Positions 26,003 through 54,607 of a stretch of DNA of 64,000 nt are shown one piece after another. Each line of letters begins with the position of its first letter. Positions within the stretch are counted from its first letter, which is position 1. A program made the position numbers and the translations under genes. The notes under the pieces were generated by a model. That model was not told the origin of the DNA. It worked only from the letters and a program-made list of their open reading frames with translations, and did no database searches. Location: the sequence record NC_020851.1; one strand, written 5' to 3'.

Positions 26003-26082
26003 TTGGTGAATTCCTGATGACTTAACTACAATACACGATTTTGAGGTCTGTGCTCATTTATTGTGCCACTAATACTTTTGGC
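26003..26082 (-). promoter_or_regulatory. early promoter cassette E
   Basis: -10 TATTGT 26028-33; dyad 26065-82; leader identical to B. Confidence 0.75.
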
Positions 26083-26525: not shown

Positions 26526-26605
26526 GTGAATTCCTGATGACTTAACTACAATACATGATTTTAGGGTCATGTGCTCATATAGTGTGCCACTTCCCCGACT
26601 GTCAC
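26526..26605 (-). promoter_or_regulatory. early promoter cassette F
   Basis: -10 TATTGT 26548-53; dyad 26586-603. Confidence 0.75.
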
Positions 26606-26680
26606 ACTCATAAGGTCTCTCTATGGGTCTTATAAGGTCTTCTAATGCCCTCTCGTGACAGTCGGGGAAGTGGCACACTA
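26580..26680. repeat. perfect 26-bp inverted repeat, 49-bp spacer
   Basis: TAGTGTGCCACTTCCCCGACTGTCAC (26580-605) and its reverse complement (26655-680). Confidence 0.95.
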
Positions 26681-26712
26681 ATACACGTCTACGGTCTCTC
26701 TGATGCTAATAT
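26657..26712 (+). promoter_or_regulatory. rightward copy of the early promoter
   Basis: dyad 26657-74 then 32 bp then TGc-TAATAT 26707-12, same spacing as cassette F. Confidence 0.5.
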
Positions 26713-26830
26713 CAACATTCTCGTCACCTTCCAGTCCTAAGATATCATTCCAATCAATATCTTTAAGATTTAAATCATCATAACACTCGATGTCTAATGT
26801 AACACTTATGATGCGTTTGTGTGCGTACAT
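26678..26830 (-). CDS. small acidic protein (50 aa)
   Basis: manual translation MYAHKRIISVTLDIECYDDLNLKDIDWNDILGLEGDENVDISIRETVDVY. Confidence 0.6.
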   Translation of the reverse strand: MYAHKRIISVTLDIECYDDLNLKDIDWNDILGLEGDENVDISIRETVDVY

Positions 26831-26906
26831 GTGTATCTCGTATGATGTGTGTTATAATGTGTTATGTGTACACATATCTCGTAATGTATACATGTATCTC
26901 GTAACG

Positions 26907-27110
26907 TTATGCGTAATGTTTATACGCAAGCTCTACGTAATCACATGTATCTCGTGCGTACTCATCATCTATCTCGTATGTATCCTGGGTGTTATGTGTA
27001 TCTCGTAGTGTATATGTATCTCGTGCATAATGCTCACACATCTCGTCTTTATAATACGTATAAGACTCGTTGTTATAATGATACTGTAACTCGTGGTCTT
27101 CGTAATACAT
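26907..27110 (-). CDS. Tyr/Asp-rich small protein overlapping the TCTCG array
   Basis: 67-aa ORF ending EYARDTCDYVELAYKHYA, resembling small ORFs I recall from other cyanomyoviruses. Confidence 0.5.
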   Translation of the reverse strand: MYYEDHELQYHYNNESYTYYKDEMCEHYARDTYTLRDTHNTQDTYEIDDEYARDTCDYVELAYKHYA

Positions 27111-27200
27111 GGGTCTCGTCGAGATTTGTATGTTACTTGTATATTATACAGACATCTCGCACGTATGTCAAGTATGATCTCGTGCGGCATTCATAAGCAT

Positions 27201-27208
27201 TATTTATA
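27201..27208 (-). promoter_or_regulatory. possible T4 late promoter TATAAATA
   Basis: exact match; a second at 27487-94; both in AT-rich context. Confidence 0.4.
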
Positions 27209-27257
27209 AGTCTCGACGAGAAAAATGTGTGGGTCTCAGAGTTTTTATGCGGGGTGC

Positions 27258-27286
27258 TTGACAAAACTGCCGTCTTGTGGTAGAGT
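27258..27286 (+). promoter_or_regulatory. rightward sigma70 promoter with no downstream ORF
   Basis: TTGACA-17-TAGAGT with extended -10 TG. Confidence 0.7.
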
Positions 27287-27308
27287 GCGGGTAAAGGTCA
27301 CAAGTCTC

Positions 27309-27412
27309 AGAAGGTTTATAAGAGTATTAGAGAAGGTTTATAAGAGTATTAGAGAAGGTTTATAAGAGTATTAGAGAAGGTTTATAAGAGTATTAGAGAA
27401 GGTTTATAAGAG
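27309..27412 (+). repeat. 22-bp tandem repeat x4.7 (iteron-like)
   Basis: AGAAGGTTTATAAGAGTATTAG at 27309, 27331, 27353, 27375 plus 16-bp partial at 27397. Confidence 0.95.
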
Positions 27413-27413
27413 G

Positions 27414-27464
27414 TTTTCCACACATAAAAGACACTTATCCACAGAAATAACCCACTTATCCACA
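27414..27464 (+). promoter_or_regulatory. three DnaA-box consensus sites at 21-bp spacing
   Basis: TTTTCCACA 27414-22, TTATCCACA 27435-43, TTATCCACA 27456-64. Confidence 0.75.
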
Positions 27465-27570
27465 GACTTGTTGGAAAACAGTTTTATATTTATAATCATA
27501 TTTAAAACCTATTTTTTAACTCATAATGTAACAATCGATACAAAATACATAGTTTAGTCATGTAATCAAT

Positions 27571-34879: not shown

Positions 34880-34903
34880 GGGTGGTTTCCCTTGTATGAA
34901 TGT

Positions 34904-34959
34904 ATTATAGAGCATCCTGAGAGGGTTTCAGGATGCTGTGTGACACTTGCCTGACTGTT
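34904..34959 (-). promoter_or_regulatory. early promoter with dyad
   Basis: -10 TATAAT 34904-09; dyad 34942-59; core nearly identical to promoter at 35588. Confidence 0.7.
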
Positions 34960-35146
34960 ACATCGCAAGAGATGCGGCACAATCAGAGATTTCTTTCATT
35001 CCTTCCTTGTCAGTCTCTATGTAGAGAAGACCGCATTCATCAATCCACCACCCTTTGATGTAGGCAGTATCTATGTGCATGGTCACGTCGTTGTTGTTTT
35101 TGTTGCCGATTCCACTTGTGAATCCGATACCTTTTGAGTAACTCAT
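34958..35146 (-). CDS. hypothetical protein
   Basis: 62-aa ORF. Confidence 0.5.
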   Translation of the reverse strand: MSYSKGIGFTSGIGNKNNNDVTMHIDTAYIKGWWIDECGLLYIETDKEGMKEISDCAASLAM

Positions 35147-35562
35147 TAGACTGCCAGTGCTCCAGCAGGGATTTCCACAGGTTCTGGTGCTACCATATCT
35201 TCAAACTGATGCATGTCATAAGCAAACCAGTTACCATTACGGAAGATATAGGAGTATTCTTCACCATCAGAGAAAAACTCTTCCATATCTTTATCAAGAC
35301 GTGGTGCATTATCTTCAAGAGATTCACCACGCATAGTATAATACAGAGCACCAGTCTCAGGCAGAGTTTCATTACTCCAACCGGCATTAGTCCAGGTGCA
35401 GGACATATTACCACCGTCAATCAGTCCTTTTACTTTCTCAACGGTATCATAGTTATCACGCAGAACTTTACCATTGAACGCAGGATAACCATCATAATGA
35501 CAATAAACAGAAACGATGCTCTGATCTTGAAGTTCGATACCAATTCTGCTGCGGGTGCCCAT
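35146..35562 (-). CDS. conserved phage early protein
   Basis: MGTRSRIGI...VYCHYDGYP. Confidence 0.75.
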   Translation of the reverse strand: MGTRSRIGIELQDQSIVSVYCHYDGYPAFNGKVLRDNYDTVEKVKGLIDGGNMSCTWTNAGWSNETLPETGALYYTMRGESLEDNAPRLDKDMEEFFSDGEEYSYIFRNGNWFAYDMHQFEDMVAPEPVEIPAGALAV

Positions 35563-35587
35563 GGTGCCTTTGCTTGATTACCTCTAT

Positions 35588-35643
35588 ATTATAGAGCATC
35601 CTGAGAGGGTTTCAAGATGCTGTGTGCCACTAAAAGAACTGTT
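35588..35643 (-). promoter_or_regulatory. early promoter with dyad
   Basis: TTGAAA-16-TATAAT; dyad 35626-43. Confidence 0.7.
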
Positions 35644-54430: not shown

Positions 54431-54433
54431 TAA

Positions 54434-54506
54434 TGCAGGTTGTGGGAATTGAACCCACCTTCGCCGTTTTATGAGAACGGTCCATTCACCAGATTGGTAA
54501 ACCTGC
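54434..54506 (-). tRNA. tRNA with CAU anticodon (elongator Met or Ile2)
   Basis: GCAGGTT/AACCTGC, CCGTT-CTCATAA-AACGG, TTCAATT. Confidence 0.85.
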
Positions 54507-54509
54507 AGA

Positions 54510-54597
54510 TACTCGTGGATCGATTTGAACGATCTCAAAGGCACTAATCGGGTGCAAAGAGTTTATAAGACTCCCCTGACTACCAAGTCTCACGAGC
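54510..54597 (-). tRNA. atypical tRNA with UAU (Ile) anticodon and long variable arm
   Basis: GCTCGTG/CACGAGT, GGAGT-CTTATAA-ACTCT, GCAC/GTGC variable stem, GATCG-TTCAAAT-CGATC. Confidence 0.7.
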
Positions 54598-54607
54598 AGA
54601 TGATGAA

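Follow-up and report, generated by a model that had tools for sequence, protein, structure and literature searches.

A perfect inverted repeat between small genes of the T4-like cyanophage S-SKS1: a possible RNA hairpin joined to a phage promoter module

A long, perfect inverted repeat lying between tiny genes of a phage genome raises the question of what it does there, and whether it does so as DNA or as RNA. The repeat considered here is found in a 64-kb stretch (hereafter the window, 64,000 nucleotides of record NC_020851.1) that is identical to Synechococcus phage S-SKS1 (HQ633071 / NC_020851, 208,007 bp), record positions being those of the window plus 124,000. The replication, late-transcription and virion genes of S-SKS1 are T4-like, and almost all of its genes are carried on the minus strand of the window, i.e., they are read leftward. 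The repeat is set among very small genes without assigned function. A preliminary description of this DNA viewed the repeat as a pair of mirror-image divergent promoters, the rightward one producing an antisense or replication-priming RNA.

The repeat stands exactly where that description placed it, with arms of 26 nt at 26580-26605 and 26655-26680 that are 100% complementary and 49 nt apart. No other perfect inverted repeat in the window is as long, and 100 shuffles yielded no match. Read on the minus strand, the distal arm (26655-26680) starts with the TAG stop codon of SWZG_00190 (26678-26680), and the proximal arm (26580-26605, minus strand) is the promoter-proximal one, which doubles as the upstream module of the predicted leftward promoter of SWZG_00189. 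Between them lies the spacer, or loop (26606-26654, 49 nt), which is near-identical in close relatives and is also conserved in a more distant group; it contains an 8-bp palindrome, CTTATAAG, related to DnaA-box-like sites to the right. The dyad claimed within both arms is a near-dyad, the outer 7 nt (TGTGCCA / TGTCACA) matching as an inverted pair at six of seven positions. Outside the outer end of each arm, at 26 nt, is a -10-like hexamer, and the claimed distance of 32 bp (the 26 nt gap plus the hexamer, measured to its far edge) is exact on both sides, in perfect mirror symmetry.

The preliminary description allowed that the repeat might be a fold-back artefact of the raw reads, and a small mobile element with terminal inverted repeats is a further explanation that the form alone (26-bp terminal repeats around 49 bp) would fit. 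In Logan's separate assembly of the source run, a contig over 26526-27338 shows no difference. An unrelated library of marine RNA (unstranded) gives a contig that has 5 differences over 26527-26754, a contig from a metagenome extends over 26603-26807, and the same repeat structure is present in many IMG/VR contigs, dozens of which have it at the orthologous site. An assembly artefact is excluded by this independent assembly and these independent samples. A MITE-like element is excluded by the orthologous position across contigs and by the single arm pair in the window, even with up to 3 mismatches allowed; moreover, the exact 8-9-nt core sub-motifs of the arm each occur once only on the plus strand of the whole phage genome, and no target-site duplication was seen. 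Artefact and mobile element together are left with a vanishingly small probability.

Three small minus-strand genes define the setting. The unit that ends at the repeat opens with SWZG_00191 (26907-27110), which encodes an acidic, Tyr-rich protein of 67 aa; a PHROG search gave no match for it, and its reading frame is kept among relatives by way of in-frame 6-nt indels. SWZG_00190 (26678-26830; 50 aa, annotated), whose 3' end abuts the predicted hairpin, matches phrog_12516 (8e-24), has 111 relatives in IMG/VR and shows substitutions that fit a coding pattern; it is a real conserved gene. SWZG_00189 (26354-26518; 54 aa, annotated) matches phrog_2584 (2e-25), would be the gene served by the leftward promoter, and has orthologues downstream of the repeat in relatives too. 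Both SWZG_00191 and SWZG_00190 lie downstream of a sigma-70 consensus promoter on the minus strand (27143-27171; TTGACA-17 nt-TATAAT, consensus score 12/12), both hexamers of which are invariant in six related sequences. With the SWZG_00190 stop codon on one side and the SWZG_00189 promoter on the other, the repeat thus constitutes the whole junction between two leftward units.

Several other features of this neighborhood deserve mention in their own right. A 13-bp palindrome, GTCTCG(A/T)CGAGAC, occurs on either side of the 27143-27171 consensus promoter (at about 27113-27125 and 27210-27222), one copy lying just before the SWZG_00191 ATG, and a small hairpin around the -35 box of this promoter changes on both sides between S-SKS1 (CGCACG...CGTGCG) and the relative L074 (CTAGA...TCTAG); from its sequence, the segment 27107-27228 resembles a pair of operators or a structured promoter. 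Exact late promoter motifs of the T4 type (TATAAATA) are found on the minus strand at 27201-27208 and 27487-27494. The former is a short way upstream of the early consensus promoter, so the two genes that follow, SWZG_00191 and SWZG_00190, may be transcribed at late as well as early times. The sequence ACGAGATA is present in 7 copies within 190 bp (window 26834-27024), all on the minus strand, out of only 10 minus-strand copies and 0 on the other strand in the whole 208 kb genome; copies occur both within SWZG_00191, where they encode a repeated RDT peptide, and in the non-coding gap, and their number differs among relatives. Elsewhere in the window (54433-54598, minus strand), ARAGORN predicts a tRNA-Met (CAT) and a 91-nt tRNA-Ile (TAT) beside tRNA-Leu, which is the only one of the three annotated there in the GenBank record.

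Examined for sequence content, each arm is a copy of a promoter-upstream module, as judged from its recurrence, with the general form across lineages of about TGTGNCA-N10-TGNCACA. The seven leftward copies of the module in S-SKS1 fall into two parts of the window, 23.8-26.6 kb and 34.9-35.6 kb, where they lie among genes that encode 50-90 aa. These minus-strand promoter cassettes include copies at window 23883, 24713 and 25122, a partial copy at 26070, and copies with a different spacer near 34960 and 35631; the same module is found upstream of other leftward S-SKS1 genes. The distal arm is the only module copy on the other strand in S-SKS1. In IMG/VR the exact pattern GACAGTYGGNNNAAGTGKCACA has 87 matches in 66 contigs, where about 2 would be expected by our own calculation, and a looser definition of the module collects 107 unique contexts that fall into 27 clusters with unrelated spacers. 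Most of the 107 contexts have a -10-like hexamer 28-31 nt after the module, and this near-constant distance in 27 unrelated spacer contexts makes module and -10 look like a functional pair. In several copies of the family, module and -10 are separated by a GC hairpin or by a terminator of canonical form that includes a T-run. When defined more broadly, the module has 102 matches across 596 Gb of bacterial genomes, against about 104 expected by our estimate; the matches are in scattered unrelated taxa, with none in picocyanobacteria. Being enriched in viral contigs and at chance level in bacterial genomes, the module appears to be phage-specific.

Known regulatory sites were compared with the module. 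A sigma-54 reading of TGGCAC was rejected by eye, the -12 element being missing; picocyanobacteria are not known to have sigma-54. NtcA, CRP, LexA, Pho and HLR1 sites showed no fit in an informal comparison with their consensus sequences. In the literature covered on S-SKS1 and on cyanophage promoter motifs, no account of the element was found. Two other minus-strand promoters of S-SKS1 (window 34900-34960 and 35560-35631) have the same module with a TATAAT -10, and between the two elements a conserved hairpin (GAGCATCC...GGATGCT), which is the classic layout of promoter/stem-loop cassettes (PeSLs). In a second group of viral contigs in IMG/VR (L007, L008, L012, L016, L018 and others), the module, as GGTGGACAGTYGG...AAGTGGCACA, precedes quite another sequence, richer in GC and with motifs of the GGTTAT type about 42 nt downstream; the module would accordingly serve in two or more promoter contexts, or phage groups, that are unrelated to one another.

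The leftward promoter proposed in the preliminary description therefore stands as a predicted member of a repeated promoter family. Its -10 is TATTGT (plus-strand ACAATA; 26548-26553, minus strand), conserved in the cassettes of both S-SKS1 and the IMG/VR contigs, where the family -10 is either TATTGT or TATAAT, and the module ends about 30 nt before it. A consensus scan finds no -35 match in the leftward unit. Neither this unit nor the rightward one has a -35 box, and the consensus sigma-70 scan accordingly lists neither.

A module of this type might simply be a protein binding site, and the two arms a pair of operators that bind the same putative phage-specific dimeric protein, giving looping or cooperative control of the SWZG_00189 promoter. 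The near-dyad form of each arm (TGTGNCA-N10-TGNCACA), the 75 bp between arm centers (about 7.1 helical turns, and thus the same face of the helix), and the viral enrichment of the module over its bacterial background all agree with such an arrangement, as do other lineages in which the modules are only 40 bp apart or in direct orientation. Module spacing, however, ranges from 40 to more than 100 bp among lineages, and the inner 10 nt co-vary between the two arms but differ from those of the other module copies in the genome, which recognition by a protein does not predict. An operator pair as the explanation of the repeat is therefore considered improbable.

The co-variation just mentioned is central to what the repeat is likely to be. 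Approximately 60 distinct sequences downstream of SWZG_00190 homologues were compared, and about 35 of them have a long inverted repeat at the same place, so that the repeat is kept in many cyanophages of the ocean; the arms occur in at least 8 sequence versions, and the opposite arm matches in every version. RNAalifold, applied to an alignment of 23 distinct sequences, gave a 19-pair helix with both-sided changes at 7 pairs. The covariation score of the specified structure is 0.218, compared with 0.102 for shuffles (0 of 500 reach the observed value) and 0.02-0.06 for slid pairings, and a separate count agrees with it. In S-SKS1 the inner sequence of the arms is GTCGGGGAAG, and that of the other copies (P1-P3) is GTCGGACAAAG or GTTGGACAAAG; contig 3300027996_000667 has arms with GTAGAGGAAC and other modules with GTCGGACAAAG. 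Since the arms track each other and not the other modules within a genome, the covariation is not accounted for by co-evolution with a binding protein. What the alignments leave is selection on pairing or arm-to-arm conversion, and gene conversion between the arms could keep them alike without any selection on pairing.

The relatives also indicate how the stem is used and lost. In the core helix, read on the minus strand, 6 cells are G.U and 0 are A.C, an asymmetry that rests on about 4-5 independent events and weakly favors a leftward (minus-strand) RNA; over all loci, including weak stems, the counts are 12 versus 7 and are uninformative. Four relatives (L083, L108, L111 and L113) have a single module and no long stem, from which it follows that the hairpin is dispensable. 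In some lineages two modules lie 40 bp apart and form a 10-bp stem. In two others (L125 and L144) the modules are directly repeated, and a canonical terminator separates them, a pattern that, in these two lineages only, fits a terminator-like role for the long stem where there is no canonical terminator. Among cultured phages, S-T4 has the same layout and S-CAM7 a single module. The same repeat and promoter precede different genes or UTRs in relatives (e.g., L084, L141-L156).

Taken together, these comparisons make it most likely that the repeat is a selected stem that would form in the leftward transcript as an RNA hairpin. Both candidate start sites being outside the repeat, no transcript other than a leftward read-through one would contain both arms, and the arms are kept complementary, for which two independent promoters have no need. 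The folding energy predicted for the RNA is -62.3 kcal/mol (z = -9.6). A transcript would start at the 27143-27171 promoter and cover SWZG_00191 and SWZG_00190; the RNA stem would begin at the SWZG_00190 stop codon, and its 3' arm would double as the upstream module of the SWZG_00189 promoter. With the stem at the stop codon and its 3' arm shared with the next promoter, the element would be a composite of 3'-end hairpin and promoter. The hairpin may attenuate or terminate read-through, or it may mark a site of processing or stabilization (3'-end protection), and a 26-bp duplex would be long enough for RNase III processing. We infer its action as RNA, and its effect on the transcript, from these comparisons, and on the more specific proposal of a PeSL-like hairpin/promoter composite acting on the leftward transcript our confidence is evenly divided.

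If the hairpin terminates transcription, it does not appear to do so in the usual manner. A consensus terminator scan finds no intrinsic terminator at the repeat, and the lack of a U-tract after the stem (2 U in the following 8 nt) together with the 49-nt loop means that it is not a canonical one. The RNA-library contig described above (26527-26754) crosses the hairpin, so that termination, if any, would be incomplete, unless that contig represents DNA carry-over. An Rfam search gave no match at gathering score, only sub-threshold matches to miRNA precursors (29.9 bits versus 99), which reflect the long hairpin and nothing more.

How, then, does the rightward half of the proposed divergent pair fare? 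In that explanation the distal arm is an oppositely oriented module that drives a rightward extended -10 promoter, the candidate being TGC TAATAT on the plus strand (26704-26712), at the mirrored spacing and with a predicted start near 26719. The modules are identical, and each has the same 26-nt gap to a -10-like hexamer, as a divergent pair should have. The chance of finding TAnnnT at one fixed position in the window is 2.6%, or 0.2% with TG in front, and the constancy of the module to -10 distance across the 27 unrelated spacer clusters lends the pairing weight. The two promoters need no complementarity between the arms, yet the arms stay complementary, and the rightward unit, too, has no -35 match.

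Conservation gives some further support to the rightward promoter. The codons that lie under the antisense TGnTAANAT are the most conserved synonymous run in the last 30 codons of SWZG_00190 among 50 distinct homologues: the third position is T in 49/50 at the I/V codon (entropy 0.14), T in 46/50 at the D/H/N codon (0.48), and C in 43/50 at the S/T codon (0.67). Other I/V codons of the same last 30 codons are varied, three of the four having mostly C (entropy 1.2-1.56). This synonymous-site comparison, which was made post hoc on related sequences with kinship ignored, is suggestive of a rightward promoter, and the location of the hexamer inside coding sequence confounds its conservation as a -10.

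Of the mirror-image pair as first described, then, the repeat, the symmetry and the leftward promoter are borne out, and the rightward promoter is plausible, on the strength of its mirrored spacing, which is unlikely by chance, and of the conserved synonymous sites. The rightward unit is indeed without a credible ORF, the plus-strand ORFs of the region looking like antisense shadows, and it would run antisense through two genes, SWZG_00190 and SWZG_00191, that both appear to be real. Its product would be a candidate non-coding RNA antisense to SWZG_00190 and possibly SWZG_00191, although this RNA would meet the consensus promoter at 27143-27171 head-on. Divergent promoters as the main account of the locus are a tentative possibility, short of probable. 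A rightward promoter can coexist with the hairpin reading, and a two-way node can be envisaged in which the leftward RNA closes the immediate-early SWZG_00191-00190 unit and the arms as DNA recruit one putative factor, which would fire SWZG_00189 leftward and an OOP-like antisense RNA rightward, beside a candidate DnaA-box origin. Such a node is rather unlikely as a whole; if it exists, the module would be the missing upstream element of a cyanophage promoter class that lacks a -35 box.

The candidate origin lies to the right of these genes. At 27309-27464 there is a 22-bp tandem repeat in four to five copies, each of which includes CTTATAAA as read on the minus strand; after them come the DnaA-box-like sequences TTTTCCACA, TTATCCACA and TTATCCACA, at intervals of 21 bp. 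These repeats have a bearing on a DNA-level function for the locus, either a cruciform formed by the arms or replication primed by a rightward transcript, which would form an R-loop at the tandem-repeat and DnaA-box region (27258-27537). The perfect arms have a predicted single-strand DNA fold of -34.3 kcal/mol (z = -10), and about 600 bp rightward are the 22-bp tandem repeat, the DnaA-box-like sites (27414-27464) and T4-type late promoter motifs. Against this, G.U-type cells are tolerated in the stem, and a cruciform is unlikely at this repeat, its 49-bp spacer making extrusion kinetically unfavorable. The role as primer or R-loop put forward in the preliminary description also appears unlikely: the transcript would have to cross two conserved genes and the head-on promoter before reaching the candidate origin, and a closer rightward promoter (27258-27286) already faces the tandem repeats. 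A DNA structure or origin function is thus regarded as very improbable.

The hairpin and promoter, if they work as proposed, would be of more than local relevance. T4-like cyanophages are, to our knowledge, without MotA and AsiA, and the timing of their early and middle transcription is poorly known. The family described here offers a concrete plan for a promoter, in which a near-dyad module of 24 bp stands about 30 nt ahead of the -10; the module is common in ocean viral contigs and does not exceed chance in bacterial genomes. The S-SKS1 repeat is a clear case of a covarying hairpin welded to such a module promoter, and would extend to marine cyanophages the PeSL idea of cassettes that both regulate and shuffle small genes. 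The antisense promoter, if true, would add a simple form of cis-antisense control of immediate-early genes beside a candidate origin.

Comparison with better-known systems helps to place the element. Like an intrinsic terminator, it has a strong predicted hairpin right after a stop codon at the end of a unit; unlike one, it has a loop of 49 nt (3-8 nt is usual) and no U-run, and it was not called by the terminator scan. The R-loop origins of T4, oriF and oriG, consist of a promoter with a downstream unwinding element. The rightward unit resembles them as a T4-like phage promoter (here a candidate) whose transcript has no ORF, and differs in that no AT-rich unwinding element is found, the sequence downstream of 26712 being the conserved coding sequence of SWZG_00190. 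It differs further in that its transcript would cross coding genes and a head-on promoter, with a separate promoter/DnaA-box module present at 27258-27537. The OOP RNA of phage lambda is short, comes from a promoter that closely follows cII, and is antisense to the 3' end of that gene. The rightward promoter, if real, would be comparable in following a small early gene and being aimed into its 3' end; the promoter type differs, and no terminator that would give a short RNA was found here.

Among known systems, the closest is the PeSL (promoter-early stem-loop) cassette found in T4-type phages (Arbiol et al. 2010; Comeau et al. 2014). PeSLs are repeated promoter/stem-loop composites of hyperplastic genome regions that serve as terminators and as recombination points (PMC2839356, PMC4122927), and in their commonest layout the hairpin lies between an upstream promoter element and the -10 (PMC2839356, Arbiol et al. 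2010). A 2015 paper found no dense PeSLs in cyanophage S-PM2 and stated that a high density was unreported in cyanophages (PMC4503421). The S-SKS1 element shares with PeSLs the nature of a repeated composite in a region of tiny ORFans, in which a stem-loop is joined to the promoter of the next gene and acts on upstream transcription, both functions being predicted in the S-SKS1 case. Its seven leftward copies are clustered in a hyperplastic region of small ORFs, and the cassettes lie at break points of gene shuffling, as seen from the different genes that follow them and from the single-module deletion forms; other copies of the S-SKS1 family even have the hairpin between module and -10. There are differences as well. 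A 24-bp phage-specific module about 30 nt before the -10 would take the place of the sigma-70 -35 box, which is absent. The stem at this junction is upstream of the promoter, with which it shares only its 3' arm, and it is built from the module and an inverted copy, giving 19-26 bp, much longer than in PeSLs, and a loop of 38-54 nt. Finally, the host of the phage that carries it is a cyanobacterium.
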